Shown: positions 3,142 through 34,852 of the stretch, in pieces
Layout: each line of letters opens with the position of its first letter
How positions within the stretch are numbered: the first letter of the stretch is position 1
Origin: Glycera tridactyla
Lineage: Eukaryota
Assembly (NCBI GenBank): GCA_965644265.1
Contig: OZ286476.1
Location: 20,212,001 to 20,276,000 of the forward strand
Length of the DNA: 64,000 nt
Direction: 5' to 3'
Translations under genes and position numbers: made by a program
The notes under the pieces: generated by a model
Databases searched by the model: none
Seen by the model: the letters and a program-made list of their open reading frames with translations, nothing else
What the model was told of the DNA's origin: nothing

Positions 3142-3411
3142 CAATTCCTAAGACCTTCATCACCCCACTGACAGACATCACAATCCCCGAGGGTCAGACT
3201 GCAACATTTGAAGTTGAGGTATCTGAGACTGTCAAGGAGGTCATGTGGTTCAGAGCTGGTAAGAAGATTCTCAAGTCTGATAAGCGTGCTGTGATGACAG
3301 TAGAGGGACGTATTCATCGCTTGATCATCAAAGATGCTGTAGTCTCTGATTCCACAGAGATCACAGCTAAAGCCAATAAGGACAGCACAGCTGGAAAATT
3401 GACAGTTACAG
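3142..3411 (+). CDS. Ig exon 2 (AIPKTFITPL...GKLTVT), 270 nt
   Basis: cccttag acceptor, G|gtaaga donor. Confidence 0.93.
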
Positions 3412-4034: not shown

Positions 4035-4313
4035 AGATCCCATTGACCTTCCTCACTCCACTTAAGGATGTCACCATCCCTGAGGGTGAAACTGCCGTCT
4101 TTGAGTGTGAAGTCTCCAATCCCAAACAACCTGTCACCTGGTCGCGCAATGGCAAAAAGATTCTCAAATCAGACAAGCGCGCAGTGTTCACAGTAGATGG
4201 TGCAATCCATAGATTAACAATCAAGGATGCAAAGGTTGAGGATATGGCCGAGTTTACAGCTACTTTTGGCAAGGAAACCACTACTGCCAAATTAGTTGTA
4301 GAAAAGCCCAAAG
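4035..4313 (+). CDS. Ig exon A1 (EIPLTF...VEKPK), 279 nt
   Basis: tttcag acceptor, G|gtttgt donor. Confidence 0.92.
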
Positions 4314-4894
4314 GTTTGTGTCTCCTGTATTCTTTTTGTTCTCTGCAAATGCAAATTTGCTGTTGGCACTCTTGCCTCTCTAAGTGCCATCAAAATGCTT
4401 GATCTTTTTTCTCAGAACATCTCTACTTTCATTGAAACATCTCTCCCTTTGCACACCCACTCTCCTCCCACAGACAGTCTACTTTATTTGTTTAGGGATC
4501 ACCTATTCTCAGTTGATTATCATTCCCATCGAGAGTGGTGGGTTTGAACAACAGATGTCACTTTTTTGGCTACTTGGAAGTCCTCAAATTCTGGTTTGAT
4601 CATATCTCTAATGAAGTATAATATTAAATCATCCACTTCTATCTGAATTTCGAATTTGAGAACCATCTGAAAAGTGGGCCCATGACCTTCTGGATACAAA
4701 TCATTCATGGCAATCGCTTTTCAGTTTGTTGGATTTCATGTAAAAATGATACTATAGGTAACAAATCTTGTCAAAGCACCTCTCAGTAAATGGATAGGAA
4801 AATCAGGAAAGGAATCATATATTAGAGAATGAATTATATGATCATAATATGTGTGTGCATTGACCAGTTTTCTTGTCATCTCTAAAACTTTCAG

Positions 4895-5164
4895 AGGAAC
4901 CAGCCAAGTTCATTTCTCCTCTCAAAGACGTAACCACACCTGAAGGTCCCACAATCACATTTGAATGTGAAGTGTCGAAGACAGGACTGACTGTGGAGTG
5001 GTTGCGTAATGGAAAGAAGATCTTGAAATCAGACAAACGTGCCACCATCACCGTCGATGGTACCAAGCACATTTTGACCATCAAAGACTGTGTGGTTGCT
5101 GACACAGCAGAGTTCACTGCCAAACTTCCAGAGGATCAGACTGTTGGCAAACTCACTGTCACAG
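4895..5164 (+). CDS. Ig exon B1 (EEPAKF...GKLTVT), 270 nt
   Basis: tttcag acceptor, G|gtcagt donor. Confidence 0.92.
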
Positions 5165-5530
5165 GTCAGTTGACAGCATTGAAGAATTCGGAATTAAGTT
5201 GTATGTCTAGCATGCCTAACATTTGTATTCATGACTGATGTTGTATCGTCAGATTCAATCGCATTACTTATTTTATTTAGTTTCTTGTTTTGCATTATGG
5301 CTTGATACAATTTGATGGTGATTTGTCGAATGCAATCTATTTTGTGCACAAGCACAAGTTGAAATTGGGCATTCTACATGTTGTCAGGATGTCGTATCGA
5401 TGATATCATACATAAATGTGATAGGAGTCATGAACAATAACTTTCCCATTTTGATTGGATGGGTATCTCTGTGAATCACTTGAGGTATGAATTGGGCAAT
5501 ATATATCTCACAAATAGTGACTAAAATTGT

Positions 5531-6111
5531 TTTGTCACCATATGGGAAGTTCAGCATGGTGCTACATGTCGATTTCTCAGTATATCAGTGAAAAGATGAT
5601 CTTGGCATGATTCACTGTTGTAACATTCTATTTGCAAATGCAAAGTTTATTTGGCAAGTGCCGGAAATCTGTTAGTAATTGTCACATCAGGCTTGAATTG
5701 AAAATGTATCGATCTTCTAAAATGTCATGAGAATTGAATCTGGGCATCTGGTCTGGAAGAATTCTTCGTTGCATATGGTGTCAGTTGCTTGGGAGAGTGC
5801 TTTCAAGGGTTACCAACAGATAAAGAATTAATTTGTCACCATATGGGAAGTTGAGCATGTTGCTCCTTGTCAATTCCTCAGTATATCAGTGAAAAAATGA
5901 TCTTGACATGATTCACTGTTGTCACATTTAATTTGCAAATGCAAAGTTTATTTGGCAAGTGCCAGAACTCTGTTAGTTATTGTCACATCAGGCTTGAATT
6001 GAAAATGCATCGATCTTCTAAAATGTCATGGGCATCTGGTCTGGCAAAATTCTTTGTTGCATATGGTGTCAGTTGCCCCGGAGAGTGCTTTCAAAGGTTA
6101 CCAACAGATAA
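5531..6111 (+). repeat. Intronic tandem duplication, two ~290-bp copies
   Basis: tttgtcaccatatgggaagtt...ttaccaacagataa at 5531-5823 and 5832-6111. Confidence 0.9.
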
Positions 6112-6984
6112 CAAAAAATGTGTAGAAACATCAGTTACCATCAAACCACTTTGAGCTGATGGCAGGTGGTCAAGACATTTTGAGTTGATGACTTCTTTAG
6201 ACTCAGGCTCACTTCCAAACTGTTTTCACCAGTGCTTTTTCTGTGTCCTCTACTGTGATCGTTTCATCCATGTTCATCTGATCTTCTGCACTTACTTTAT
6301 GGTGATGCCTTTACACTATTAGTTATCTTAGATATGTTTTTGCTGGACTGATCTGCTTCTATGTCAGTTTGGAAAATCTAAGTACTGCTTCTTTAGATTC
6401 TTTTACTTTTGTTCATTCGTTTTTACACTCAGCAGCTTTATTTTCTTTGGCGCATGTTTTGTGTGTAAAGACACATGAATGTATTTATTTGAAGATGCTT
6501 CTCTTAGTCATATTATTTGCTGGACTGTTCTGCTTCTTCAGTAATTTGCAGGATTGGGAATTATGTGTTCAGTTGATTGTTTCCTTTTGCTCACTCCTTC
6601 TTACAATCAGTGACATGCATAATTATAACATTTAGCCTTCTGAATTATCATATATGCTTATTACTTTGTGATCTGTTGGTAAACATCTTGATAGCTTGTA
6701 TAAATTGTGTATTGAATTCTATTCTCATCTCATGCTTCTAGTGGATTTCTTCCATTTGCAGATTGCCAATATTTTCAAAAATACAAGTGTTGATCCATAG
6801 GCTGCAATGCTTACTCATAATTTGTGGTCACTTAACTGTCAAAAAGTGCATGGTTACCATAGATTATATTTCCAGCTTGGATCATATTTTTATGTTTCTG
6901 TTGTTGGTATGGAAAATAGGGAGTATATATGATTGTGAGTGTGAATACAATCCAAATGCCAATCAATGTATCATACTTTTGCAG

Positions 6985-7263
6985 AGATTCCATTGACCTT
7001 CCTCACTCCACTCAAGGATGTCACCATCCCTGAGGGTGAAACTGCCGTCTTTGAGTGTGAAGTCTCCAATCCCAAACAACCTGTCACCTGGTCGCGCAAT
7101 GGCAAAAAGATTCTAAAATCAGACAAGCGCGCAGTGTTCACAGTAGACGGTGCAATCCATAGATTGACAATCAAGGATGCAAAGGTTGAGGATATGGCCG
7201 AGTTCACAGCTACTTTTGGCAAGGAGACTACTTCTGCCAAATTAGTTGTAGAAAAGCCCAAAG
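6985..7263 (+). CDS. Ig exon A2, 279 nt
   Basis: ttgcag acceptor, G|gtttgt donor; near copy of A1. Confidence 0.92.
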
Positions 7264-7667
7264 GTTTGTTTGACTTGAATTCTCCATGTTCTGTGCACAT
7301 GCTTTGAAACTCTTGGTTATCTGGTTGATATTTTGTACCATCAAAGTTCTGATGTTTCTATTGAATATGCATAGCGTTTCATCCTCTGCTCAGAATCACA
7401 ACAATTGGATTTGCGCATAAGTCATCATTCATTAATTGTAAATCATGTTGAAATGATTTGTCATAATTTCTCGGTAATGTTTGATGATTGGAATTTAGTT
7501 GTATGCTTTCTCGGCTATTCAGTTCTGAATTATACATTGATTGATCATCACCTAAAGGACAATGGCTTTCCCATTCCTACTATCTGTCTAGAGAATATCT
7601 GTCCATATTGCCTGAGATGAATGTTTGCATATATCAGTACAATTCTACCCAATTTCCTCGTTTCCAG

Positions 7668-7937
7668 AAGAACCAGCCAAGTTCATTTCACCTCTCAAGG
7701 ATGTAACCACACCTGAAGGTCCCACAATCACATTTGAATGTGAAGTGTCAAAAACAGGACTGACCGTGGAGTGGTTGCGTAATGGAAAGAAGATCCTGAA
7801 ATCAGACAAACGTGCCACCATCACCGTTGATGGTACCAAGCACATTTTGACCATCAAAGACTGTGTAGTTGCTGACACAGCAGAGTTCACTGCCAAATTG
7901 CCAGAGGATAAAACTGTTGGCAAACTCACTGTCACAG
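7668..7937 (+). CDS. Ig exon B2, 270 nt
   Basis: ttccag acceptor, G|gtcagt donor. Confidence 0.92.
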
Positions 7938-9298
7938 GTCAGTTGACAGCATGGAAGAATGGAATGCGATAGTATGTCATGTATATGCTGAATATATTTG
8001 AGATGTTCCTGCTGATGCTTGTCAGTGATTTATTTTAGTCATTGACATTGTTTGCTCATCAGTTCTGTTCTGCATCCATTAAGATTACATGACGCATGCT
8101 GGAATGATTCAATTAGATATCACATGCTAATTGAAATCATCTATTCTATATCAGTGAAATTAGCTCTTCCCATGAAACACTGAAACACCTTACTTTGATA
8201 ATTGAGTGATTTGGTGAAAATATATATATGTTTCATAATACACAGATGATTTGAATCAAGTAAATAGCAACCAAATGGTATTGCTTTTCAGGATCATTTA
8301 TTCTTTTTCATGGTTGAACATAGAATTTCCATTCTTGAACATGCTTTCAGAAATCTGTCCAAAATATTTTTGACTCAAACTATAATTTGCCTTTGAACAC
8401 AGCTGTGATCATCCTGAATCTTTGGACTTTCCAATTATCTCATCTTCGATATAGCCACATTGTAGAATTACTGTGGATTTCATGAATCCATGGAATGCTG
8501 ATCATCTTAACATTGTTATACTCATGTTTCATTTTTACATCAGAATCGTATTGGTGTATCTGTATTGGTGCCTCTTATTGGTCTTACCTGACCGTTGTTA
8601 CTGCACCAATGGATTATGATGTTTCTTCTAGTTCTGTCACTTGAATGGCTTGATGGGTACTGCTCATGTTTTGTGAATATTGTTCAGCGCTTACTTATTT
8701 CAGTTTAGATAAGTTGTATTAACTTTCAGCTGATTTTCTGTTGTGATTTCTATAATGTTGTTTCACTAAAACATGTTGACTATAACATTCAGAGATTTCA
8801 GCATGATACTTTTCTTTCCGGTCACTTGCGACTGCCTTGTATGAGATAGCTGCATAATTTCAATGTTTGTCCATTTCATCCTACAGAAAAATGTTGTGCT
8901 TTGTTTTGAAACTGGTATATGCGCATCTTCCACCAGTTTCTTTTTGGATGTTCTTTGATGTATGTTGAAGCATTGTGTAGAATGTACTCATATATCATTT
9001 CCCATATCTTTTCATCAAGTAGCACATTTCATCATTTGTCAATAGACTCACTAATTTGCTATCTATCACTCAATGGTGAATTACACATGTAGTTGTTGTG
9101 TCCAGCCATATTACTTTCTGTTTTCTATTATTTCATCAGATAATTCAGTTCAGATTTATCACCAAATCGGGCCAAACCATTAATTGGAAGATACTTTTTT
9201 ACTTCCGCCTCAATACTGGTATAATTGAGTTTATGAATATCACTTTCACTGTGTGAGTGTGTGATTCTAAATGTTTGTATTGTCTGTCCCCCTTCCAG

Positions 9299-9577
9299 AA
9301 ATTCCATTGACCTTCCTCACTCCGCTCAAGGACATTACCATCCCTGAAGGTGAAACTGCTGTCTTTGAGTGTGAAGTCTCCAACCCCAAAGAACCTGTCA
9401 CCTGGTCGCGCAATGGCAAAAAGATTTTCAAATCAGACAAGCGAGCTGTTTTCACTGTAGAAGGTGCAATCCATAGATTGACAATCAAGGATGCAAAGGT
9501 TGAGGATATGGCTGAGTTCACTGCTGTATTTGGCAAGGAAAAGACCACTGCCAAACTGGTGGTTGAGAAGCCGAAAG
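9299..9577 (+). CDS. Ig exon A3, 279 nt
   Basis: ttccag acceptor, G|gtttgt donor. Confidence 0.92.
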
Positions 9578-10018
9578 GTTTGTTGTTGCTTGTTCTTGGT
9601 GGATTTATTTCGAGAATGCTGGATATGAACAGTTCCAAGAGTAATATCCAGAATCAGATACGGTTATTATTTCTACTGATCAATAAGTTCCCAATATATA
9701 CAGTACTTCAGCAGAAGCTACTCTTCAGATGATGACTTAATATCCAAGGATGTATAGAATGTATGAGTTTGCTGGTCAACAACATTTAGGATGATTTCAT
9801 ATTGTATTTCTCATACCTCTATAACAGATAAATCACTGTAGTATGCTATATAATGGACCTATTCATTGGGCTGGTCGATATATACCACATCAGAATTAGT
9901 ACCAGTCAAATAGTATATTTTTTAGGTGGGAACATATAATTGATCTTTTTAATTGAGTTAGGTATCTAAGCACCACTCACTGCATATACATACAACATTA
10001 TTATGTTCATACTTGTAG

Positions 10019-10288
10019 AGGAGCCTGTGAAGTTCATCACCCCTCTCAAGGACATTTCTACCCCAGAAGGTCCAACTATTACATTTGAGTGTGAGGTCTC
10101 AAAACCAGGTGTGCCTGTGACATGGTTCCGCAACGGAAAGAAGATTATGAAATCTGATAAGCGAGCAACCATCATAGTTGATGGAACCAAACATTTCCTA
10201 ACCATCAAAGACTGTGTGGTTGCTGACACTGCTGAATTCAGTGCCAAACTTCCAGAAGATCAGACTGTTGGCAAACTTACTGTCACAG
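10019..10288 (+). CDS. Ig exon B3, 270 nt
   Basis: ttgtag acceptor, G|gtcagt donor. Confidence 0.92.
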
Positions 10289-11610
10289 GTCAGTTGACAG
10301 CATGCATCTGCAAAACTATTTATTCTATGCTAATTCTTGCTGCTATCTCAGTCTTTCTTCTCTTCATCGAATTCTGAACTTACTTCTCAGGTTTGATGCT
10401 ATGCATTGTTCTGAAGGTCACTACAGGCCATTAATATTTTTCTCTAACCAAATATGAATATACCTCATCCATATCGGCAATAATTTGAATAATGTGTTAA
10501 TCTTTCCATCATATTGATGATGTTTTACTAGATAATCTATGAACCAACTTCATGTCATGAATGAGCTTCTGCCATGGCTAAACAAATGGCTTTATTATGG
10601 AGTCATGGCAGTATCAATTCATTGTGGTCATCTAGTGTTGGAACAAGTTTAACCAACTTGATATTTCATGTTGTCACTTGATTTATATATCATACTCCAT
10701 GCTGCACATGAAATAATAAGGCTGGCCTGCGAACCATATGTGAGATATAGTTTACCTACCCCAATTTTTGGCCCCATGCACAGATGTATAATCATTGCTG
10801 AACTATCATTATGAAATTCACCATGGCAGTTATTGAAGAAGTCCCTATTTCACAAATTCTTTGGATTTCTACTATCCATGATTCCATTATTCAATACATG
10901 GTGTGGGAAAGATTCTCATGAATTAAACATAAAAGTACAAATCACATATATTCAAATTGAGGGAATAATACTTCTCGTAGGTATAACATTTCTGTTCGCT
11001 TCTACCTGCTTCTCTGAGGTATTGCCAGCTCTGTCTTCTCTTCTCTTCTCTTCTCTTCTCTTGCTGTTGCTCTCATATTCTGTTTACAATTGCTTGGTAG
11101 ATGATTCTTCTCTCTGTTTTTGCTGCAGCTCACATGATTGTATGCAGTCTCTCTGCAGGCATTGCTAATCCTATTATTATTATTGGTGTGGGAGGTTCCA
11201 TGCATATGAAGGATTCTGTAGTGTATGGAAGATATTGCAGTTGGCCTTCTGTATTCAGAATTATCTTAGCTAGCATTCATCAAGTCCTCACAAGATATTG
11301 GATGTATTCGATAGGTCATAAGTAGTATTTCTACTCACATTTTATACATGAATTCATTGGTTGTCGGTGCATATGATGGACCGGTAACAGGTGTTGATTT
11401 CAGTGTGGTAACTTGAAGTTTCCAAACTATTGCACTGTTTTGAAAAGCTATGTATAGCATTTATTGCTTCTTGTCACTATAGTGAATTATCATACAATGT
11501 ACTGGGGCTATTATGAGGTTCCCACATTGTGAAATGATCCCTTAAAGTTGATATAGTACATGATATATCAAAGTTGTCTAATTGTTTGGATTAATTCCTG
11601 ACCTTTGCAG

Positions 11611-11889
11611 AGATCCCATTGACCTTCCTTACACCACTCAAGGACATTACCATCCCTGAAGGTGAAACTGCCATCTTTGAGTGTGAGGTTTCCAATCCCA
11701 AACAGCCTGTTACCTGGTCCCGCAATGGTAAAAAGATTCTCAAGTCTGACCGCCGTGCAGTGTTTTCTGTGGAGGGAGCTATTCACAGATTGACAATCAA
11801 GGATGCCAAAGTTGAAGATATAGCCGAATTCACTGCCACATTTGGCAAGGAAAAAACCACAGCTAAACTTGTTGTGGAGAAGCCAAAAG
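11611..11889 (+). CDS. Ig exon A4, 279 nt
   Basis: ttgcag acceptor, G|gtttgt donor. Confidence 0.92.
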
Positions 11890-12310
11890 GTTTGTCATAG
11901 TTGGCTCGTGCATGAAAAGTTTGCATCAAATATGCCAGGAATTTGTTTAACAATTTTCTCTTCTTTTAACACCATGACAATTTCAATCAGGAACTACAGG
12001 CAGTTGGAATTTGTCATCCACAAACCAATGTAGGAGGTATCTATGAGATCTCAAGAATATCAATAGCACCACCATACAACTGTCAACCAGGTAAGCCTGG
12101 ATATCCTGTCATCTATACCATCAGCTATATATTTGTGTAATATGATTGGATCTGCCATTGATGAAATATTTTTCTATTGGTATAAATAGATGGAATAGGA
12201 TGACTATCACCTGAATTTTAATGATACTATGATATCAGATGTGAAACTCCTTGCTTGTGTGAGTATGCGTCAGGCATTGCTTTATCTGACTGGGGGCTTC
12301 ATATTTTCAG

Positions 12311-12580
12311 AGGAGCCTGTGAAATTCATCACTCCATTGAAGGATATCACCACCCCGGAAGGTCCCACAGTGACACTTGAATGTGAAGTATCAAAGCCTG
12401 GTGTCACGGTCACGTGGTTCAGGAATGGAAAGAAGGTGCTAAAGTCAGACAGGCGTGCCACCATCTCAGTTGATGGCACCAAGCATTTCTTGACAATAAA
12501 GGACTGTGTGGTTGCTGATACAGCAGAATTCACTGTCAAAATACCAGAAGACCAGACTATTGGCAAATTAAGTGTCACAG
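12311..12580 (+). CDS. Ig exon B4, 270 nt
   Basis: tttcag acceptor, G|gtcagt donor. Confidence 0.92.
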
Positions 12581-14846
12581 GTCAGTCGACAGCATGTTTG
12601 AGCAGAAAAATTCTGTGTGCATTGGCCGATAATTCTTTATCGACCAATCTTTCATAATGTGGATATCGCTTCTATTCTTTCATCCATCAACATGAATGTG
12701 ATGGCTCTGTCAAATCAGCAATGTGCTCATTTCCAGAAATGGAGGCTGATGTCTGCCAAATTCCTATTGATTTCAAGACCTGAAACACCAACTGTTTCAA
12801 GGAGTGATATGGCAAACATTTTTTCTGGGAATGAACACATTTTAGTATCTGGAGCTTTGTGATGCATCAAAACTTCTTACTGCATTTTGAATCATTCTGA
12901 TATAATTGATAATTTCTTAACTGGTTACAACATAGCTGAAAACTTTGCATTCACTTGCATGACTAGACTCTTTTCCTGCAGACTCAAGCTAATTGTTAAG
13001 ATGAATATCTTGACACCCTCCTTTGGTGTAGATACCTAAGGTTTGGTATATTGAAAAGGGTGCATGAGGAATGAGGCCCATTATCAAATAATCCCATTAA
13101 TTGCTTGTTATTCACATTCATTTCACATACATACCTCGTCTACTAGATTGTCTTCTATATCAATGGGGATTTTCTCCTATCCTTTTATTACATACATCAC
13201 CATATGCTGCATTAAAAGAATTGATGATACCTACAGAAATGCGTGATTGATGAAATCACATGATTGATTCACAAGTAGGTTCGGCTAAATTTATTGCATT
13301 TTTGAACCTAACCACACCTCATCCATGATGCTCTAAGGCATTTGGAAGCTTGATTGTTGCATCTCTTCAATTTTAGGTGGAATTCAAATTTTCATCCGGC
13401 ATTTATGTAACTGTAGATGCTCTTTGAATTCTACCTACCATGGTGGCAGAACACCATGAGAGAGCATATTTGAATGCTTAGCACTGTCATGGGATCTTTT
13501 TGATGGGATCATCCAGTGCCGATCACAAAGCCCCTGCTTCCTATGTCTTAGCAAATATTAGGAAATGTTGAGATTTCCTTGCTTACTCGATGTATGCCGG
13601 GAACAATTTCACATTATTGGCGTTGGAAATAGAACAGTTACACTACCCAATGTCTTATATGCGCTATGTGCATTCGTTTGATAAGCATTTTGTTCATACT
13701 TTTTTCAGCTGTTTTGAAGAATGTACATTCCTTGTACATTGGCTATGTATTTGGTGCTCACCTTCTTGTCTTTTGTGGGCTAAAGTTGGCTTGATATCTC
13801 TCTGCAACATGGTGCTCTCTGGAATGGCCAGTGGATATTGTACTTTGTGCTCTGCTTTGAATTTCATGGTTTCAACTCAGTTTGTGATTTTTGTATTGAA
13901 TGTTTGTCTCAACGCAGGTGCAATTTTCAAGCCTTGTCCCACCATTGATCAGAATGAGATCAGCATTTTGAAATTGAAATATATCTCAGTGGGTTGAGAT
14001 GAGGGTTGAAATTGTACACTAGAATTTGGGAATGATGCCACATCTTTGCCTGATGGGAATGATGCCACATTTTTGCCTATCTATATGTGATCATCTCATG
14101 CTTTTGATCATTTCGATGTCTCATTTGCAAGAAACAGAGTCCGTGCTATTCAAAATAGCAATTTATACGTCGCATTCCTGAGTATCATAACAGTACTCTT
14201 TCACCAAAAAATATACAGATGAGCTGTGGCTTTGGTGGATTGCATCAAGGTACCCACAATTCTTTCAGCATTGAGGCATGATTGAGGAATGATTGTGATT
14301 TGGGGATTACCAAAAATATATCATTAGGCTATAATATTATACAAGGATTTACTGTACTGTGTTCTTTTCTAATTGTCTCTGAAAGAGTGGTTTATCATTG
14401 TAGTATTGAGTCCTATTATGGTTCTGATTCATAGCAGAATCATATGCATTTGACATCACCTCATTATCTTGAGATACGAAACTGTTATTCCACCCTGTCA
14501 ATGTGGCTAGTGAGGCTGTATCAATCAGTCTTGAGTCAGTATTGTGGATTCATATTCACACAAAAATTCAATTTAATGGTATAGTTCTTTCTCAAGGTTC
14601 ATGAGAATGTTGATGGTGAATCAGGTATAATGCCAATTAGGCCGTTGAATTTGTCTTCAAAACCCTTACTTCTGATGATCATTGTTCAGTTTCCTGTGTA
14701 TTCTTCATCGACCAGTTCAGTATGTCTCTTTCAGAAACCACCTGTCGCCAAGGCAGCTTTTTCTCATAGTTATGCTGTTCTGACATCCACTCAGTCTATG
14801 TTTCTTTATATCCACTCTATCATGTCTATGTGTGTGACCTTTGCAG

Positions 14847-15125
14847 AGGCAGCCTTGACATTCCTCACCCCTCTGAAGGACCTTACCATCCCAGAAGGGG
14901 AAACTGCTGTCTTTGAGTGTGAAGTCTCCAATCCCAAGGAGCCAGTCACCTGGTCACGCAATGGAAAAAAGATCCTGAAATCAGACAAGCGTGCTGTATT
15001 CACAGTCGAAGGATCTATCCATAGACTAACAATCAAGGATGCTAAAGTAGATGACACTGCTGAGTTCACAGCTACATTTGGTAAAGAGACAACTACAGCT
15101 AAGCTGACTGTTGAAAAGCCAAAAG
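14847..15125 (+). CDS. Ig exon A5, 279 nt
   Basis: ttgcag acceptor, G|gtttgt donor. Confidence 0.92.
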
Positions 15126-15414
15126 GTTTGTTGATACATTTTCCCTGGTTTTTTGTTCTTGTGTTGTCTGGTCATTTGTGATTTAAGCAATGTATGGAAT
15201 TCCATTATTTAACATTTTCTTTGGATTGATCATTTTTGGAAAAGTGAATTCATGCCAGTCTGAAGCCATATTATCTGGATATCTATAGATGATTTGTTGT
15301 GCACTCTGTTCTGGGTGATATTCTTGATTGGGTGAAAGCGTTGTTAAAGTCAGATTCATGTACACAAGCAATTGTGCAACTGATATTCCATGAATATCAT
15401 TCATTGTCTTGTAG

Positions 15415-15684
15415 AAGAGCCAGTGAAGTTCACATCACCACTGAAGGATGTGACAACTCCAGAGGGTCCAACCATTACCTTTGAATGTGAAGTGTCCAAA
15501 CCCGGTCAGACTGTTGAATGGTTGAGGAATGGCAAAAAGATCCTGAAATCTGACAAACGTGCGACAATCACTGTTGATGGTACCAAGCACATTTTGACCA
15601 TCAAAGACTGTGTAGTTGCTGACACAGCAGAGTTCACTGCCAAATTACCAGAGGACCAAACAGTTGGCAAACTCACTGTGACAG
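15415..15684 (+). CDS. Ig exon B5, 270 nt
   Basis: ttgtag acceptor, G|gtcagt donor. Confidence 0.92.
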
Positions 15685-16917
15685 GTCAGTTGATATTATG
15701 CACTTGATTACTGCGCTTACTTCAGTTTGCATTAGTTGCTTCTTATGTATCTATCTTGATGACTGTGAAGGCCATCACTTTGGATATTTCACCATAAAGA
15801 GTGTTTTTTTGCATACAATTTTGGTTGCAATTATGATTTGAGGCAATCCTTTGCTGCAAAGAACTCCAGTGCATCATTGCTTTCTCTTTTTTGAGTTATT
15901 TATGCTAGCCATTTGTCTCAGATGCTCTGCCTATGCTGTGACCTATGCCTAAACTTGGAATTATATTCCACTCAGCAATTTGTAAGTTCTGTTCCCCGCT
16001 GGGCTTCCATGTTGTACATTTTTAGCTTATTGTAGCTTGTCATGCTATGTTCATATTCATTTGCATTTCTGTTTCATGCTTTCTGTCTTTGTATGGTTGT
16101 CCTTTTACTTCTGCATCTTCAGTTACTGCAGTTTGTCAGCTTTGACTATATTTTCAATGTATGCTTATTTCCTTTCTGCTGAACTTAGGTGCTTATTTTA
16201 GGTTGTATCATTATTTATTGCAACTTCTGTTGCTTCAACTTTTGGTTGCTATTGAAGGACTTTTATTTTTGGCTGAACCTATGTGTTTGATTCCATTGAC
16301 ATCAAGTTTTCGCAATTTTGCTTGGCTCAGCTTTGTGTTTGACTGTAAAAAGTCATGTGATTCGTGTCACATCTGCTGTGTTCATATCTGTATCTGTCTG
16401 CTTATGTGTTTCACATTGATTATGATCCAAGGTATCATAATATTTGGCTGTTCGGTCAGATTACATTCACTCTGCCATATATGTATTAATTCGTCAACCA
16501 AGCTCACATTGTTGTCTTCAGTTTTGCACTCCATTAGTTCATTGTATCCACATTTGACTTAACTACCTTGGTTTTCAATTGTATCTCACCATCAACTCAG
16601 GTATCATTCAAAAAAGCATTTTGATCATAGTTGGATGTGATCGTATCATTTCTCTTCAATGCTGTGGTTTATTTAAGAGTTATGCATAAAAACATAGATT
16701 TCAAGTCAGAGGACCATATACTTCTTTATCTATATAGAGAAGCAATGTTTTCTCCAGCCTCTTAGTAATGTTTACATGAAGCAACAACTTGTTACTATGG
16801 CAGGGATAGTGATATTGTGTGCATTTTTGCTCTAGAAGTATTCCTCCATTCAATAGGTATTACTTGTTAGATGATTTTCCCCCATTTGACCCCCATGTCA
16901 TCATTCCTGAATTCCAG

Positions 16918-17196
16918 AAGCTGCCTTGACCTTCCTAACACCCCTCAAGGATATTACCATCCCAGAAGGTGAAACTGCTGTCTTTGAGTGTGAAGTCTCC
17001 AATCCCAAACAACCTGTTACCTGGTCACGCAATGGCAAGAAGATCCTGAAATCAGACAAGCGCGCTGTATTTACTGTTGACGGATCCATCCATCGACTGA
17101 CTATCAAGGATGCAAAGGTTGATGATACTGCTGAATTCACAGCAACCTTCGGCAAAGAAACTTCAACTGCTAAGTTGACTGTTGAAAAGCCAAAAG
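16918..17196 (+). CDS. Ig exon A6, 279 nt
   Basis: ttccag acceptor, G|gtgcgt donor. Confidence 0.92.
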
Positions 17197-17526
17197 GTGC
17201 GTCACAGTTCTCATGTTTGCATGTACTTTATATTACACCAGTCAGTGTCACAGGTTTCTTTGTTCTGTTCATCCTTGTTGAATCACCCAATGGTAATCAT
17301 GTCACCACCCGGTAATTCTTCATGGTTATAAACTCATATCATCCCAGTCAAGGATCAGAATCGTTCCACTGAATATTTGGTTCAGAACAAGTGAATGAGA
17401 CTATTTTTGTTTCTATACATTTCTATCATCACAATCATCTTATAAGATGATGAATAGTATCACAATTCTGCAGTATCCAAAAACAGTTTCACTTGACTGA
17501 AAGATAATATTTTCTTCTTCAAACAG

Positions 17527-17796
17527 AAGAGCCAGTGAAGTTCACATCACCACTGAAGGATGTGACAACTCCAGAGGGTCCAACCATTACCCTTGAATGT
17601 GAAGTGTCCAAACCTGGTCAAACTGTCGAATGGTTGAGGAATGGCAAAAAGATCTTGAAATCTGACAAACGTGCAACAATCACTGTTGATGGTACCAAGC
17701 ACATTTTGACCATCAAAGACTGTGTGGTTGCTGACACAGCAGAATTCACTGCCAAATTGCCAGAGGACCAAACAGTTGGCGAACTTACTGTCCAAG
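17527..17796 (+). CDS. Ig exon B6, 270 nt
   Basis: cttcttcaaacag acceptor, G|gtcagt donor. Confidence 0.92.
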
Positions 17797-18664
17797 GTCA
17801 GTCATCAGCATGTGTAGAGATAAGAAGTGAATGTACAACTAATGCGGGCTCTGAGCATGAGTTCTGATTCTTTTAATATTGAAGAAACTTGGATGTAGGA
17901 GCAGCATGTTCACGTACTGTCATTCCAGTTGTACATATATGTGATTTGCTGTACAGTCCAACGCCATTAGCTGACAAATTTGATTCAATATTTGTGATAG
18001 TCTAACAGCATGAAATGTGGGGATAAGTTTCTCTACTGCAAACCTATAGGTGTCATTGAAGGACATAATGCCTATATGTAGGTGAATATAGTGGATGTTG
18101 CATGCAAGCAAACACAATGCATTCAGTTAGAAGTCAAAAAGATTTCCTGTACTCACAGTGAAAGTTTTCCATGGTAGAAGCTTTCAAAATGCATCCGCAT
18201 TCCGTCTTCAGCTACTGGCTACTGTGGTGTTTGCTTTCACTTGGTACAGTTGGAGTCGGTGCTTGCCACTTGACTGGATGCTATGCTACTGATTCTGGCT
18301 CACAAAGAAAGTTTGATTGTGACTTCATTGATAAGACTGACTTTATTGATAAGACTGCATGCATATCATTTGCTGAGACAGTTCAGTTACAAGACCCCAG
18401 TAATATGTCACTCGCTGTTCAGTGTCTCAGTGGTATTTTCGTTTGGGTACATATTGCTCATCTGCATGATTAGATTCATCTGTTGTTGCTTCTCTTCATA
18501 ATAACTTTGTTTGTCTTGGGATTCGAATTGCATGTATTCCACAATGTTTTAAAAATTGTATACTTCTTCATGAAGGGTGAAAATGTTCAAGGGATGTTAT
18601 TCTGTGGTATTTTCTTGCTTTCATATGTGGTGCATGCTGAAGAGTTGATCAACACATCAGATCA

Positions 18665-18666
<2 letters not shown>

Positions 18667-18731
<65 letters not shown>

Positions 18732-18750
18732 GAGAGAGAGAGAAGAGAGA
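18667..18750 (+). repeat. (TG)30 followed by (AG)n microsatellite
   Basis: Direct reading. Confidence 0.95.
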
Positions 18751-18853
18751 TATCATGTTACATGACATATATACATTCCTTCGAAGGCGAAACACCCTCT
18801 TCTTCTTTGCCTCATCTGTTCGTTACACTCATCTCTTGGTTCCAACTTTCCAG

Positions 18854-19132
18854 AAGAGATCCTATCATTCCTGAGCCCCTTGAAAGATGTCACCATCCCT
18901 GAAGGTGAAACAGCTGTTTTTGAGTGTGAAGTCTCCAATCCCAAGGAGCCAGTCACTTGGTTGCGCAATGGCAAAAAGATCCTGAAGTCAGACAAGCGTG
19001 CGGTGTTCACAGTTGATGGGTCGATCCATCGATTGACTATCAAGGATGCCAAAGTAGATGATACTGCTGAATTTACAGCCAAATTTGGCAAAGAAACATC
19101 AGCTGCTAAGCTGGTAGTTGAGAAACCCAAAG
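18854..19132 (+). CDS. Ig exon A7 (EEILSF...VEKPK), 279 nt
   Basis: tttccag acceptor, G|gtgtgt donor. Confidence 0.92.
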
Positions 19133-19543
19133 GTGTGTTTCAATTAGTTTCTTGTTTTATTTTCTCTGAACATTTCAGATGATTGCTGCCACTATTCTAC
19201 CATTTGCATAACCAAGCTTATTAGTTGATCAGACCTAACGTGTAAGTTGAAATGCAGCATATTAGAGTGGAGTATCATTTCAAATTGAACATGTAACACT
19301 TTTTGTATATGGAGGTATGATGGAAAATGATTATGATGAGAATTAATCATGGAAAATATATTTTCGATTACACATTGACCATGACTATCAATTACCAATT
19401 TGTACTTCGAAAACTAATGTATGTAAACATATCCGTGATAATTTATTGTATCATCAACTGATGCATTGAGCATTAATGTCATTGATACAGCTTGAATTTT
19501 CCCAATGTCATTCACATCAATTTGGCTTTATCCTATTTTATAG

Positions 19544-19813
19544 AAGAACCAGTGAAGTTTGTTTCACCACTTAGTGATGTCACTACTCCTGAAGGGCAGA
19601 CAGTGTCCCTGGAGTGTGAGGTTTCGAAACCAGGTCAGACTGTTGAATGGTACAGGAATGGAAAGAAGATCTTGAAATCTGATAAGCGTGCCACTGTCTC
19701 AGTTGATGGCACCAAACACAAGCTGACATTCACGAATTCCAAAGTTGATGACTCAGCTGAGTTTACTGCTAAGATCCCAGAAGATCAAACTGTTGGCAAA
19801 CTCACTGTTGAAG
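19544..19813 (+). CDS. Ig exon B7, 270 nt
   Basis: tttatag acceptor, G|gtcagt donor. Confidence 0.92.
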
Positions 19814-21105
19814 GTCAGTTTTAGGAGCTTGTTGATGTTAAGTTGCTGCTTATAGTTATTGAGGCTTTTTTTATTCAGCTTGACATTTTCTGATAGTATC
19901 ATGTTGTTTCAAGTTGCATCTGAATTGAAATAGGATCAATTCATATCATGGTTATGAACTGATCGAATTTTTGCTTTCTGTTACTAAATATTGTCTCATG
20001 CATTCCATTCCATGCAATAAAGTTGAATGGCAACCCAGAATACAGAGGTCAGAATGCCCTGTTACAAGACCTCTTTTTGCGAATGTTGTCTTGATTCCGG
20101 ATTGGTGAACTGGCATCAGTTCATGTTGTATCAGCTTGCTTGCATTGCTAGATTTCATTCTTTTGTGATGTGACCATCATTAGAGTTCATTATATTCCTT
20201 ACATCTAGGGTACATCAAGAAGTTTGCATCACCAAGTTTTGCTACAAGGCTGTCAACATATCTGCTTCATAATTTCTCAATGAGCATACTCATGTATGCT
20301 GGTTCAGAAATATATTTTGCTCTCCATCAAGTGCATGGAATCACTGTTGAAGACTTATCATGCTCTCATGCTCACCCTATGAAGGATGTCAGTATTTGAG
20401 AGCAGATGATATACAACTCAGCAGATTCTGTGTTACAGCTCATTGTGTCAGATAATTGCTTCTTGTTTCTGAAACCACCTTATCATCTTTCTTTTTGCTT
20501 TTCCGTTCATGCATATCTTAGCATCTTTGTCGGTATAGCATCATCAGTGAATGTCAATTGATACTAGTTACGTCTTTTGATTGTCATGTAATTCTCCTTA
20601 GGCTTCAAGTGTTATAAAGCTTGGCTTTAGAATCTTATACGCTTTGTTGTGATTTGTTGTAATGCTAGTTTGTCTCTCAGCAATGTGGATTTTCTTGCTT
20701 TATTCTGTCTTGTATTTGAGTTGTTGATGAATGTATTTGTAAACTGGAAAATATGCATGTCTCATTACAAAGTTGTTTCGAATGTTCTTGGATGGCTCTT
20801 CTTGAATATGTATTTGTTCAATTGATTACTATGTAGTAATATGCTGTTTGATTTCTCTGTACAAAATACGATGTGAGCAATTGCTGACATTATAACATTC
20901 CAGCACCTATATAATACAATTATATCTGATTCTATTCCATTACTGGATGAAGATGTGTGTCTGTGTCTGTGGTGTGTGTGCGATCCATTCATCAGCTTGT
21001 GTGCTTCTACATGCCAGTGTATGGAAGATGAAGTCTTAACTATCAGATTGGTATGATGATAATTTGTTGGCATCCTCTGAATGAGTTCATCTTTCCCTCT
21101 TCCAG

Positions 21106-21384
21106 AGGTCCCTTTGACTTTCCTTAGTCCACTGAAGGACCTAACCATTCCTGAGGGTGAAACTGCTGTCTTTGAGTGTGAAGTCTCCAATCCCAAACAA
21201 CCTGTTACCTGGTCACGCAATGGCAAGAAGATTCTGAAATCAGACAAGCGTGCTGTGATCACGGTAGAAGGATCCATCCATAGACTCACTATCAAGGATG
21301 CGAAGGTTGATGATACTGCTGAATTCACAGCTACTTTCGGCAAGGAAAAATCAACTGCTAAGCTGAGTGTTGAGAAGCCAAAAG
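21106..21384 (+). CDS. Ig exon A8, 279 nt
   Basis: ttccag acceptor, G|gtgtgt donor. Confidence 0.92.
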
Positions 21385-22080
21385 GTGTGTTCAATATTGT
21401 GTTATCAGTAGAAATTGAAAGTAAAAGGCTGACTGGGGAAACCGTGCTCAACGCTATCACTTCAGTGACGAAACATAGATATGATGGGAATTTTCAGAGG
21501 ATTCTTTTTTCTGTAGTTATATACGGCAATCATCCAGCATTGATGGAACTCAGATATACAAAGAATTGCACTGAAAGCAATACACTTCTCTATGTTGTAG
21601 AGCTTCTGTCACTGATAAACAGTAATAATGAAACTGATACATTGAGATACACTGTGGGTAAATGCTGGTCAATCAGTGTTTTTCAAATGATGATGCAATA
21701 TCATTAGGGTGGCTCCTATTTCTGTATGATAGGAAAGTTGTCCTGTTGGTTTTAGGAGTCACGCCTAGGGGCAGGTAATGATGATCAATTCAAATTGTTT
21801 GTATTCTATCAAACTTAATTTTATGATATGGAATAATGTGGGATGATATAATGGCATTATGTATAAATTCATAAAACATATCACCAGATCGCATTAGGAA
21901 TTAGGAGAGGTAGATAATGGGGAGGGGGTCATAATGATAAGAGGTTTGGGGGAAATAGAGCATGTTCAACATATAGACATCATAGGAGATAATGTATGCT
22001 GATTGTATCAGGAAGAGATTACAGAAAAATATATGCTTATAACTACTAACATTCATATGGTATCTGTTTCACCCATCTAG

Positions 22081-22350
22081 AGGAACCAGTGAAGTTTGTT
22101 TCACCACTCAAGGATGTGACTACTCCTGAAGGCCAGACAGTTGTCTTGGAATGTGAAGTTTCAAAACCAGGCCAGACTGTAGAGTGGCTCAGAAATGGAA
22201 AGAAGATTCTGAAATCAGATAAACGTGCTGTAATCAAGGTTGATGGCACCAAACATACATTGACATTCAATGATGCTAAAGTTGATGATACAGCTGAGTT
22301 CACTGCCAAGGTTCCAGAGGATAAAACTGTTGGCAAACTCACTGTTGAAG
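22081..22350 (+). CDS. Ig exon B8, 270 nt
   Basis: atctag acceptor, G|gtgagt donor. Confidence 0.92.
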
Positions 22351-29457: not shown

Positions 29458-29727
29458 AAGCACCAGTGACCTTCACCACCCCTCTCAGTGACACAAGTGT
29501 CGTTGAGGGCGAAGATGTTACATTGGAGTGTGAAACATCCAAACCAGGTCAGAAAGTGGACTGGTATCGGGATGGAAAGAAGATCATGAAGTCCGACAAA
29601 AGGGCATCAGTCACATCAGATGGTCCTAAGCATAAACTGATAATCAAAGATGCTAAACCAGATGATGTAGCTGAATTTACTGCAAAAGTTGGGGATGCTG
29701 AAACAGCAGCAAAACTCTCAGTCTCAG
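29458..29727 (+). CDS. Ig exon H1 (EAPVTF...KLSVS), 270 nt
   Basis: ttttag acceptor, G|gtcagt donor. Confidence 0.92.
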
Positions 29728-30080
29728 GTCAGTGAGTCACATCATAAAAAGCGATATTTATAGGTCTCATCATATTGCCAACTTTCTATCTGTAGCTGCT
29801 CTATGCTATACGAATTATCATGGACTAAAGATATGATCACTTAATTGTTATCACATCATTCTCTGTGATGCAACTATCTTGCTGCTAAGTTGAAAATGAT
29901 GATTGAAAAATCTCATAGTTGGAATTGAATTAGTTTCTTAGTATATTCTCAGATTGATGATATTACATCAGAAATCCTGGAAATGTCAGGATTATTTCCA
30001 CACTCACTCTGCTAACTCCATGATGAAATCTATGATTCCAACGAACAGGTTTGTCAGCTTATCTCTCATTCCAATTTTAG

Positions 30081-30350
30081 AACGACCTCCTGCATTCACA
30101 TCACCTTTAGAGGACACCATTGCCACTGAAGGTGACACTGTGACCTTGGAGTGTGAGACGGCCAAACCTGACCAGAAAGTTGAGTGGTTCAGGAATGGCA
30201 AGAAGATTCTCAAATCAGATAAGCGGGCTTCAATTTCGGCTGATGGCACGAAACACAAGTTAACTGTGAAAGATTCCAAAGTTCCTGATACAGCAGAATA
30301 CTCTGCTAAAGTTGGTGATGAGGCAACTACTGCCAAACTTGATGTGAAAG
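30081..30350 (+). CDS. Ig exon I1 (ERPPAF...KLDVK), 270 nt
   Basis: ttttag acceptor, G|gtcagt donor. Confidence 0.92.
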
Positions 30351-31693
30351 GTCAGTTCAGTAGACATTGTTGAGATGCTATGCATAGCAGATGCATTATT
30401 CATTAATTGCAAGTCAATATTCATGCTTATCGCTGTTGCAACAAATGTCCCAGTGAATGATTTGTGTCCTGTCTGATCTGATACAAATCATTTCTTGTAT
30501 GGGTAGTTCTGTAGTTACTCAATGGATGTTATCAAGATTTAATGCTTTCAGTATTAACAGAATATTGCCAGACTCATGCTTGTTTGCTTCTAAGTATTGT
30601 GGCTGGAAATAATTGGTGTCCTAATCTGGAGGCCATATCTCACACCAATTTTCTTCTATTTGGTGTAAGACCCGGCCTCTTGATTCCATATTCCTTTCCA
30701 TACAATATATGGATTTTTCCTCCTAACATTAGAAACATTTTCTCACGCTAGTTTCTTCTTGTTTGATGTGTCAATTAACTTGAATGGTGATGGCACATTT
30801 TTTTTCTTCCTGTAGTTTTAGGGTCATGCTGTATGGATATGTCTGATATATTGATCAAGCTCTCATTTACCACACATTATGAATCATCATCTCATCTTCT
30901 TTGCTGTTGAATAACAGATATTTGCTGACTTGTCTAGGCCATTCATTTACTTTGCTTGCTTTTGCAATTCTTGCTGTTCCCAGTTGATGTAATTATTGAT
31001 TATAATGCTATTATTGCATGAAATAATCATTTTCCTCTGATCCACCTCTTCATATTGTCTTGTGCCTCTATCTCATTCTGCTATATATTCTAACTGTTGA
31101 TTGATGATGCTATTGTTGGAGCTGTATAAGATTATGTATGTCTCATCTATATGAATATCTACATGTTTCCCATCTCGCAAACAATATAGAATGATGTGGT
31201 TTAATTTTCATTTTGTACTCTTTATTTACTTTTCCATAACTTTCCCTTTCAGTGATGTGGGAATGGAGTGAGTGAATTTCAAACTGGGCAGTAACATTTT
31301 CATGTCACTTTCGATCACTTTTCTGGTAGTATAGCTGACTTCAGCATTGTCTGTATATCCTTGGAAGTGATTTAATTTTGGACGCTTTCTCTTGACAAGA
31401 CTTCACCATCCTTTCCTTGCATCTATCCATTTTATATGATTGATTTGATGAGCAGAGCAATAGAATTTGTCATGAAAGTGTCCTCGTTTCCCTTGTGAAA
31501 GCTACATCAAGCAATTAACATGTGTGGACTACACATACGACAAATTGATGCTTCTTCAAATAAGAATTTTGTTTTGGGTATCAATTCAAATTATATTGTG
31601 GACTTCTGTTGAAGTTTCCAGTGAACCAAGATAACCCCTCATGGTATATCATATGACCATTTGCATGATTGACACCCGCCATCTCCATTTTAG

Positions 31694-31963
31694 AAGCACC
31701 AGTGACCTTCACCACCCCTCTCAGCGACACAAGTGTCGTTGAGGGAGAAGATGTTACATTGGAGTGTGAGACATCCAAACCAGGTCAGAAAGTGGACTGG
31801 TTCCGGGATGGAAAGAAGATCATGAAGTCCGACAAAAGGGCATCAGTCACATCAGATGGTCCTAAGCATAAACTGACAATCAAAGATGCTAAACCAGATG
31901 ATGTAGCTGAATTCACTGCAAAAGTTGGGGATGTTGAAACAGCAGCAAAGCTCTCAGTCTCAG
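31694..31963 (+). CDS. Ig exon H2, 270 nt
   Basis: ttttag acceptor, G|gtcagt donor. Confidence 0.92.
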
Positions 31964-32480
31964 GTCAGTGAGTCACATTGTGAAGAGTGATATTTATAGG
32001 TGTAATCATAACTTTCTATCTGTAGCTGCTCGTTCGCTGTATGGATCATTATGGATCAAAAACACAATAGTTGAGTTGCTATCACATCATTTCTGTGATG
32101 CAACTTCTGGGCCGCTAGGCTGAAAATGATGATTGAAAAATATCCCTCCTGGAATTGAATCAATTCTAAACTTCCGGGTTCCCAATTTCCCATCAGCAGC
32201 TGCTCCCTGGCTCTTTGAATCATCATAGACTATGGTTATAATAATTTAGTTATCACATCAATCTGTGGTTCAGTTATTTGGCTGCTAGGCTGAAAATGAT
32301 GATTGAACAATAATCCAGCTGGATTGGATCATATTCTTCATGTATTCTCTGATTGATAATGTCACATCAGAAGTTGTGCAGATGCTGGAATCATTTTTGT
32401 ATACTCACTCTGCTTTCTCCATGATGAGATCATGATGCCAACCAACAGGTTTGTCAGCTTATTTCTCATTCCAATTTTAG

Positions 32481-32750
32481 AACGACCTCCTGCATTCACA
32501 TCACCTTTAGAGGACACCATTGCCACTGAAGGTGACACTGTGACCTTGGAGTGTGAGACGGCCAAACCTGACCAGAAAGTTGACTGGTTCAGGAATGGCA
32601 AGAAGATTCTCAAATCAGATAAGCGGGCTTCAATTTCGGTTGATGGCACAAAACACAAGTTAACTGTGAACGATTCCAAAGTTCCTGATACAGCAGAATA
32701 CTCTGCTAAAGTTGGTGATGAGGCTACCACTGCCAAACTTGATGTGCAAG
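32481..32750 (+). CDS. Ig exon I2, 270 nt
   Basis: ttttag acceptor, G|gtcagt donor. Confidence 0.92.
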
Positions 32751-34065
32751 GTCAGTTCAGTAGTCATTGTTAGAATGCTATGCATAGCAGATGCATCGTT
32801 TATTAATTGCAAGTCAATATTCATGCTTATCGCTGTTGCAACAGATGTCCCAGTGAATGATTTATGTCCTGTCTTGGCGGTCTCATCTGACACAAATCAT
32901 TTCTGGTATGGCCAGTTCAGTAGTTGCTCGATGGATGTCTTCACGATTCAATGCTTTCAATATTTACAGAATGTTGTCAGACTCATGCTTCTTTGCCTTC
33001 TAGTATTGTCGCTGAAAATAGTTGATTTCTGAGTTGGAGGTCATATTTGGCAGTAATTATTCTATCGTTCATGTCAAAACACACTTCGTCGTTGTATTTT
33101 TTTTTTAGACAGTATATTCATTTTTTTTCATCCTAACATTAGAAGCAATTCCTCACACTAGTTTTCTCTGGTTCGATGTGTCAATCCACTTCATGGAAGT
33201 GAATGGTGGTGAAACATCTCTCCAAGCTTCACTTCTTAATCAAGTTTTAGGGTCACTGTATGAGTAAGTCTAATATATGGATCAAGCTCTCATTCATCAC
33301 ATATTTTAAGTCATCCTCTAATCTTCACTGTGATTAACAAATGTTTGGCGACATGTCAAGGTCATATATTCACGTTGCTTGGTTTTGAAATTCTCGCTGT
33401 TTTCAGTTGGTGGTAGTTATCAATTGCAATGCTGATATTGCATGGAATACTCATTTCCCATTCTCATCTGATTCACCCACTCATATTGTCTGATTGTTGA
33501 TTCTATTATTTTAGGGCTGTATGAGATCAGTTATATCTCATCTAAATGAATATCTACATATTTTCTATCTTGCACACTATACAAGGTCGACTGATATTGT
33601 CCAAATTTCAAGTTGTCCTCTTCTGCTGACATTTTCATAGCCCTCTCTTTCAGTGATGTGATGAAAGAGTGTGTGAAATTCAAAATGGAAACAGCACTTC
33701 CATGTCAGTTTTGAACGACAGGAGTTAATCATTTCCTTCCATTTATCCATTAAGTATGACAAATCCAGAGGGGAGCAATAGAGAATCTAGGTGCTAGTGA
33801 TTGAGTCACATGCAGCGAGAGAGTATTCACTGACCCAGTCTTCTGCAGTGTCTTGTCTTCAAATGATCAGCATGTATTCAGTGAAAGTCACATCAAGAGG
33901 TCAACATGTGTGGACAATCAATACTTCAAATAAGAATGAGATTCTGGATATCAATTCAAATTATTTTGCAGACTTCTGTTGAAGTCTTTGAGAGCACTAA
34001 GGTAACAACTCATGGTATTATTGTATTACAGTTTGTATGATTGAAACCTCCCATCTTCATTTTAG

Positions 34066-34335
34066 AAGCACCAGTTACCTTTACCACCCCTCTCAGCGAC
34101 ACAAGTATCCTTGAGGGCGAAGATGTTACATTGGAGTGTGAGACATCCAAACCAGGTCAGAAAGTGGACTGGTATCGTGATGGAAAGAAGATCATGAAGT
34201 CCGACAAAAGGGCATCAGTCACATCAGATGGTCCTAAGCATAAATTGACAATCAAAGATGCTAAACCAGATGATGTAGCTGAATTCACTGCAAAAGTTTG
34301 GGATGTTGAAACAGCAGCAAAGCTCTCAGTCTCAG
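34066..34335 (+). CDS. Ig exon H3, 270 nt (carries a Gly-to-Trp change)
   Basis: ttttag acceptor, G|gtcagt donor. Confidence 0.9.
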
Positions 34336-34852
34336 GTCAGTGAGTCACATTATGGGAAGTGATATCTATAAGTGTTCTCAAATTCTCTTTGTAAACCTAT
34401 GTGTCCAACTTCCATCAGTAGCTGCTTATTGCTCTATGGATCATCATAGTTCATATACAACACTCTAGTTGTCATTGCATCACTGTCTCTGATGCAACTA
34501 TTCGGCTGCTAGGCTGAAAATGATCATGAACCATATTCTATCTGGAATTGAATCAGTTTCTAAATTTCAGTGTCCAATTTCACATAAGTAGCTGTTCTTT
34601 TGCTCTTTGAATCATCAAAGACTATGAATAAAATGATCCAGTTATCACATCACTCTCGATGTAGTTATCCGGCTGCTGGGCTGAAAATAATGATTGAACA
34701 ATGCTGTGGCTGGACTGAATTAGTTTCTTTGTATATTGTCTGATTGGTAGTATCGCATAAGAAATTTTGCAGATGGCAGCATTATTCTTGCAAACTCACT
34801 GTGCTTACTCCCTGATGAGATCATGTCAGCTTCTCTCTTGTCCCGGTTTTAG

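Follow-up and report, generated by a model that had tools for sequence, protein, structure and literature searches.

Alternating A and B immunoglobulin exons in Glycera tridactyla, read as an old amplified two-exon unit of a titin/twitchin-type gene

We analyzed a 64,000-nucleotide (nt) window of Glycera tridactyla DNA (contig OZ286476.1 of assembly GCA_965644265.1, contig positions 20,212,001 to 20,276,000, + strand, containing no N) and found in it an array in which two exon types, A and B, each encoding an immunoglobulin (Ig) domain, alternate strictly over eight units. We read this array as an old amplified two-exon unit in a titin/twitchin-type tandem-Ig spring, kept by selection and gene conversion, and we put the probability of this reading at roughly 70%. 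In the founder unit, an A exon whose 3' end had gained 9 nt coding for KPK would have been followed by a short intron, then by a B exon, and then by a long intron. Long ago, this unit would have been amplified in tandem to eight units, after which strong purifying selection would have held the sixteen domains, their exact exon sizes, and the KPK tail, while gene conversion limited to exons would have homogenized some neighboring copies.

We placed exon borders from the reading frame together with AG acceptors and GT donors. On its + strand, the window holds at least 37 exons with one I-set Ig domain apiece, and all 37 of these Ig exons are phase 1-1. Eight A exons, each exactly 279 nt long, and eight B exons, each exactly 270 nt long, occupy positions 4035-22350 of the window (Table 1), and their strict alternation, described in an initial annotation of this DNA, was borne out by frame and by AG/GT borders. 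The remaining 21 Ig exons are 267 to 273 nt long; a length of 279 nt is confined to the A exons. An alignment of all 37 Ig exons also confirmed the extra KPK linker annotated on all eight A exons, and this C-terminal KPK, a 9-nt 3' extension, is their sole length distinction. All eight A exons end in (V/T/S)VEKPK and all eight B exons in VT, VQ, or VE, and the split codon at every joint in the array encodes glutamate (E). The annotation had B exons joining as VT/VE/VQ-E-xP; the B endings stand, but xP is present at only five of seven B-to-A joints, and A exons that follow a B exon start with IP, AA, EI, or VP.

The introns of the array alternate in length as well. A-to-B introns 1 to 8 measure 581, 404, 441, 421, 289, 330, 411, and 696 nt, and B-to-A introns 1 to 7 measure 1820, 1361, 1322, 2266, 1233, 1057, and 1292 nt, in agreement with the ranges annotated earlier (289 to 696 and 1057 to 2266 nt). 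The two classes do not overlap (A-to-B maximum of 696 nt versus B-to-A minimum of 1057 nt). Full separation of eight from seven lengths would have a chance of 1/6435 under random dealing, a figure that is no independent test because the units of the array share descent. Part of the extra length of the B1-to-A2 intron is a local tandem duplication at 5525-6111 (about 290 nt, 88% identical).

Table 1. Positions of the array exons and of related Ig exons in the window
Feature	Position	Strand	Remarks
A1 exon	4035..4313	+	279 nt; I-set Ig domain ending VVEKPK; AlphaFold pLDDT 92
B1 exon	4895..5164	+	270 nt; I-set Ig domain ending LTVT; AlphaFold pLDDT 87
A2 exon	6985..7263	+	279 nt; RNA joint A2>B2 in four runs
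B2 exon	7668..7937	+	270 nt; RNA joints A2>B2, B2>A3
A3 exon	9299..9577	+	279 nt; RNA joints B2>A3, A3>B3
B3 exon	10019..10288	+	270 nt; RNA joints to A4, B4, A5
A4 exon	11611..11889	+	279 nt; optional: skipped alone (run X1 contig) or with B4 (runs X2, X3)
B4 exon	12311..12580	+	270 nt; optional: skipped jointly with A4
A5 exon	14847..15125	+	279 nt; in RNA contigs, its first 22 letters are joined to B4 and to B3
B5 exon	15415..15684	+	270 nt
A6 exon	16918..17196	+	279 nt
B6 exon	17527..17796	+	270 nt
A7 exon	18854..19132	+	279 nt
B7 exon	19544..19813	+	270 nt
A8 exon	21106..21384	+	279 nt
B8 exon	22081..22350	+	270 nt
U2 Ig exon, adjoining the array upstream	3142..3411	+	A-like sequence, 270 nt, without KPK
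C/D x3 array, younger two-exon units	29458..35122	+	All exons 270 nt; introns alignable

A maximum-likelihood tree of the 37 domains carries our account of how the array arose. All A domains fall into one clade (support 100/98) and all B domains into a second (93/87), with units 1 to 4 clustering in both, and domains group by their position in the repeat and not by neighborhood, the pattern of block duplication. Because the A and B clades match, we conclude that AB was amplified as one unit, and because the A domains, to which KPK is limited, constitute one clade, that the KPK extension arose once. Copying of a two-exon unit thus accounts for the alternation of domain type, which the tree shows, and of linker length. 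Adjacent domains of the array are 56 to 66% identical and next-nearest domains 79 to 99%. At 17 positions the A set and the B set have no residue in common, and 37 positions are invariant in 16/16 domains. In the 37-exon alignment, the nonrepeated neighboring Ig exons share most of the conserved positions, as expected from constraints of the fold.

The copies of the array are approximately 90% identical in protein, and their silent sites are near saturation. The mean proportion of synonymous differences (pS) was 0.58 among A exons and 0.59 among B exons, the mean proportion of nonsynonymous differences (pN) was 0.06 and 0.10, respectively, and the ratio of nonsynonymous to synonymous substitution rates (dN/dS) was 0.02 to 0.18. 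The KPK codons differ synonymously, and the KPK residues are invariant.

Both domain types belong to the I-set family. Given a curated cutoff of 23.7 bits, the Pfam profile PF07679 (I-set) scored 56.9 bits for A1 and 44.2 bits for B1; it also matched the Ig exons neighboring the array. AlphaFold models, made for single exons with the 37 Ig exons as the alignment, gave confident Ig folds of eight strands each (predicted local distance difference test [pLDDT] values in Table 1). In both A1 and B1, strand 1 begins at F5, and the final strand runs to residue 89 and residue 88, respectively; KPK (A1 residues 90 to 92) lies outside every strand and was modeled with lower confidence. In a Foldseek comparison, the A1 model, a beta-sandwich of the intracellular muscle Ig type, matched titin I10 with a template modeling (TM) score of 0.90 and a root-mean-square deviation of 1.0 Å. 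For both domain types, the closest solved relatives are titin I9-I11/I10, cardiac MyBP-C, titin N2A, and titin I65-I70, then obscurin. No A or B domain has a cysteine in strand F, and the array domains thus lack the canonical Ig disulfide. A second cysteine (KDCVV, residue 65) is present in B1 to B6, and it is found in neither B7, B8, nor any A domain, nor in most other domains of the window.

According to the alignment and the single-domain models, the A-to-B joint has three residues more than the B-to-A joint. It reads VEKPK-E-EPVK and is composed only of P, E, V, and K. Judging from this linker, the A-to-B joint is probably the more flexible of the two, and a hinge role for it is plausible.

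The alternation of intron length was probably inherited from the founder unit. We read it as founder heritage because the younger C/D array has the same short/long pattern: its three units alternate likewise between short introns of 353 to 517 nt and long introns of 1315 to 1343 nt, the introns are 73 to 85% alignable, and the synonymous divergence (dS) of the exons is about 0.1. The C/D introns are more diverged than this exon dS, and the C/D exons may have been homogenized too. For the A/B array, we rejected a recent duplication of whole units, given that blastn returned no intron match and that similarity ends 0 to 40 nt from the exons even in A1/A2, B1/B2, and B5/B6. Transposon insertions found no support as the cause of the long B-to-A introns. 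The two longest of these introns are single-copy in the genome, by a search that passes over very common words, so recent repeats do not explain these two, and the exclusion of transposons is to that extent incomplete.

Some array copies are far more alike at silent sites than the averages given above. The dS was 0.14 for A1/A2, 0.19 for B1/B2, and 0.18 for B5/B6, and it was 0.95 for A5/A6; in all four pairs, similarity fades within 0 to 40 nt of the exon edge. At 4035-7937 and 15415-17796, this exon-restricted similarity looks like the pattern expected of gene conversion confined to exons.

The RNA evidence consisted of contigs assembled from four runs (X1 to X4) of one study. Contigs cover the exons of 6900-12700, where the B-to-A introns are empty, and they contain the exact GT..AG joints A2>B2, B2>A3, A3>B3, B3>A4, and A4>B4. 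In runs X2 and X3, B3 is followed by the first 20 to 22 letters of A5, a string unique to 14847, which drops the pair A4+B4, and a 657-nt contig from run X1 reads A3-B3-B4-A5, dropping A4 alone. In one X2 contig, AAGCTGCC follows a B2-like end; A6 begins with this string, which occurs nowhere else. The joint may be B2>A6, which would drop three pairs, but one of its sides is just 29 letters long. The initial annotation had raised the possibility that exons are spliced as AB pairs, and this did not hold up as a rule: skipping of the pair (B3>A5) was found in two runs, but skipping of the single exon A4 (B3>B4) was found in one. Because all exons are phase 1-1, any exon of the array can be skipped in frame, as was the case in every skip observed. 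By analogy with vertebrate titin, the length of the spring is probably tuned by exon skipping.

The two exon types also differ in their donor sites. B exons have GTCAGT, the usual form in this gene. The A donors are GTTTGT in A1 to A5 (at 4314, 7264, 9578, 11890, and 15126), GTGCGT in A6, and GTGTGT in A7 and A8, and they score lower on a matrix built from the other exons of the gene; GTTTGT is unusual for this gene. We conjecture that the 9-nt KPK extension was born by a shift of the donor site. After B1 to B4, the first 16 letters of the intron are nearly identical (GTCAGTTGACAGCATG; 5165-5180, 7938-7953, 10289-10304, and 12581-12596), and the rest is unalignable. A hairpin hiding the donor of B1 to B4 (CUGUCA...UGACAG) was considered and rejected, its stability being no better than that of shuffled sequence (z from -0.5 to +0.9).

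Two further observations concern the RNA contigs. One joint leads backward by 953 positions, from 7934 to 6982, and is most simply a normal B1>A2 joint aligned onto B2, since at 7898 and 7900 it has the letters of B1; a circular RNA is possible. At 7910 and 7912 it has the letters of B2, and this mosaic relative to the reference is either an allele or a conversion tract. In addition, contigs from X2 and X4 match B3 over only about 77 nt (10033-10109) and then continue into unlike sequence. Ahead of the matching part comes a joint into an exon with a G4-like start (47731), and past it the sequence encodes ..QQVTWFKNG...; these contigs stem from another Ig exon or allele.

A protein search against 1.84 billion representatives matched 3740, of which the multidomain matches were generic Ig giants at about 30% identity (maximum 39%); the sole close match was a fragment of 113 amino acids (aa) that is 92% identical to A1. 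A word search with the A8 reading frame returned no matches. Conservation was checked on short metagenome contigs alone (L001 and L003 to L005). The 113-aa fragment and three more contigs trace back to three separate loci in a related organism; one of these loci is present in two versions, L001 and L003, with 99.1% identity over 1131 nt. Each of the loci contains a different A-type exon; all three exons are exactly 279 nt long, have AG/GT borders, end in VEKPK, and again use the donors GTTTGT and GTGTGT. They are closest to A1/A2 (88%), A6 (88%), and A5 (84%) and retain the IPLTF and AALTF subtypes. Because the exons of the relative match distinct subtypes, the array existed, and was already differentiated internally, before the two organisms split. 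As read from these contigs, the A type is conserved in the relative together with its linker.

Within these short contigs, no B exon was found in the 566, 694, and 387 nt downstream of the A1/A2-, A6-, and A5-like exons, respectively. After the A6-like and A5-like exons, the relative therefore has longer introns than G. tridactyla, where they measure 330 and 289 nt. These lengths count against tight conservation of the short A-to-B intron class and lend no support to tight selection on it. The 10 differences between L001:284-1414 and L003:1-1131 all fall within 121 nt of the A-type exon, whereas the 852 nt of flanking intron are identical; the tract is either conversion-like or a product of paralogous reads mixed by the assembler.

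Several points weigh against an old amplified unit as we have described it. The blastn comparison found no intron-intron similarity between A/B units, so whole-unit copying rests on the tree and on the C/D array, although an old A/B array (pS of about 0.6) would be expected to have lost its intron homology. The intron classes are still fully apart despite saturated sequence, which could reflect selection. Low dS in copies with unalignable introns, together with the dS of 0.95 for A5/A6, is a misfit for duplication alone, and the simple form of the reading has to be extended by conversion. Finally, inclusion levels cannot be given because the RNA evidence is in the form of assembled contigs.

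Other explanations address the same features. The array could be a designed segmental spring, in which KPK is a selected hinge at every second domain between stiff two-domain rods of about 9 nm, and the short intron makes AB a splicing cassette; we consider this unlikely. Despite synonymous change, KPK does not vary among the eight copies here and the three of the relative, it lies outside the modeled fold, and the joint that it forms is purely P, E, V, and K. The insertion arose once, however, in the ancestor of the A clade. At the roughly 0.4 changes per site within this clade, four residues would all stay unchanged with an estimated chance near 0.2, which is not unusual. A precedent for hinges at specific joints is the carpenter's-ruler model of titin I65-I70, as far as PMC3859903 sets it out. 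With respect to the cassette, the pair A4+B4 was skipped in two runs, and the possible B2>A6 joint would remove three whole pairs, but the contig that drops A4 alone yields B3-B4, and the A-to-B introns of the relative exceed 694 and 387 nt versus 330 and 289 nt here. The hinge and pair-cassette ideas are not supported beyond the linker itself. We also judge unlikely, and more firmly, a combined version in which selection acts on the two-domain unit as a module of mechanics and splicing, with stiff rods set by P/E/V/K micro-linkers, A and B coupled by the short intron and the unusual GTTTGT donor, and alternation maintained by A-A and B-B conversion.

Alternation might instead be kept so that identical domains are not neighbors, lowering the risk of misfolding between domains, an explanation that we find quite improbable. 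The low identity of natural titin neighbors suppresses long-lived misfolds (PMC4660218), and neighbors in the array are indeed less alike (56 to 66%) than next-nearest domains (79 to 99%). Yet the array neighbors, at about 60% identity, are far more alike than I27-I28 of natural titin, at 24% (PMC4660218); this is mildly unusual, and the array does not seem optimized in this respect. Copying of a two-exon unit yields alternation without selection, and the A4 skip puts B3 beside B4, which are sisters in the tree (81% and 85% identical to B1, respectively). We give still less credence to the AB pair as a two-domain binding module for a partner of matching period, such as a filament protein. The 17 type-specific and 37 invariant positions and the very low dN/dS would suit such a module, but most of the conserved positions are shared by nonrepeated neighboring Ig exons, the fact that units can be skipped speaks against a fixed ruler, and we found neither a partner nor a motif for the array. 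Least credible of all is that repeat misassembly inflated a shorter array. Repeated exons can mislead assemblers, and the two versions of the relative's locus differ only inside the exon; here, though, every unit has its own unalignable introns, the two longest of which are single-copy in the genome, and RNA contigs link A2-B2-A3-B3-A4-B4-A5 with copy-specific letters.

The surroundings of the array bear on the type of gene to which it belongs. The 37 Ig exons on the + strand form the long one-strand tandem Ig run that is typical of titin/twitchin-type genes, and in the 2.04-Gb genome all 34 of the 34 strongest A-like matches fall inside the span of the window. Among the 36 best genome matches to fn3, 26 are located at contig positions 20,298,679 to 20,471,561 on the + strand, 22 to 195 kb downstream, an association by same-strand position only. 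A single exon match to Pkinase (57 bits, profile positions 124 to 192) at contig positions 20,511,092 to 20,511,304 (+) is linked by position and strand alone. By this predicted layout, the gene is a giant muscle gene of the titin/twitchin type, and the array is in its tandem-Ig, spring-like region. Positions 36698-40645 contain an open exon of 1315 codons that is rich in P, E, V, and S and has internal repeats. In the fn3-rich downstream part, contig positions 20,342,273 to 20,344,336 (-) hold a 687-aa open frame with a reverse-transcriptase domain (RVT_1, E value of 2e-40), a retroelement that probably sits in an intron.

Titin-like super-repeats are usually taken as rulers or as traces of duplication, and this array is a very clean natural case, with eight two-domain units that depart from a plain chain by one three-residue linker per second joint. 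It could be used to test how linker length sets the flexibility of a poly-Ig chain, and it could show how repeated exons stay alike and get spliced. At present, the array is a further example and not a new principle.

Among invertebrate giant muscle proteins, kettin has linkers of about 35 residues between all of its Ig domains, unlike the array, whose joints have just 0 or 3 residues beyond the bare domain boundary. What the two have in common is a regular module in an invertebrate giant muscle protein, kettin/Sallimus of insects and nematodes being built from Ig-linker repeats (PMC3207145). Obscurin has long runs of very similar I-set domains that are almost linker-free (PMC3859903); it resembles the array in its tandem similar domains and is among the sequence matches, but no alternating linker is described there, and the fn3-rich context of the array, with its kinase match, is of the titin/twitchin type.

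The closest parallels are found in titin itself. Titin I9-I11/I10 (PDB 5jdd, 4qeg, and 5jdj) is the best match of the A domain in both sequence and fold; with 36% identity over the fold alignment, titin I10 is a fold relative and not an orthologue. The carpenter's ruler of titin I65-I70 rests on a crystal structure and small-angle X-ray scattering (von Castelmur et al. 2008, as presented in PMC3859903). In I65-I70, as in the array, linkers of a few residues connect Ig domains, and in that presentation the joints are proposed as hinges between stiffer segments. Joints of differing linker length likewise occur along the chain described here, which is known from sequence and single-domain models, and in which the linker alternates at every second joint. 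The tandem Ig region of the vertebrate titin I-band has super-repeats of 6 and 10 domains that arose by duplication and are differentially spliced, in the summary of Kenny et al. 1999 given in PMC9529554. The array shares with these super-repeats one Ig domain per symmetric exon, recurring position-specific domain types, an origin by block duplication, and optional exons. It differs from them in its period of 2 (6 or 10 in titin), in neighbors that are about 60% identical, and in a linker insert at one repeat position only, and it is part of a separate titin-like gene whose Ig domains are only 36 to 45% identical to titin I10. Duplicated, optional super-repeats of the titin type were thus already known; what the array adds is a period of two with one linker insert.

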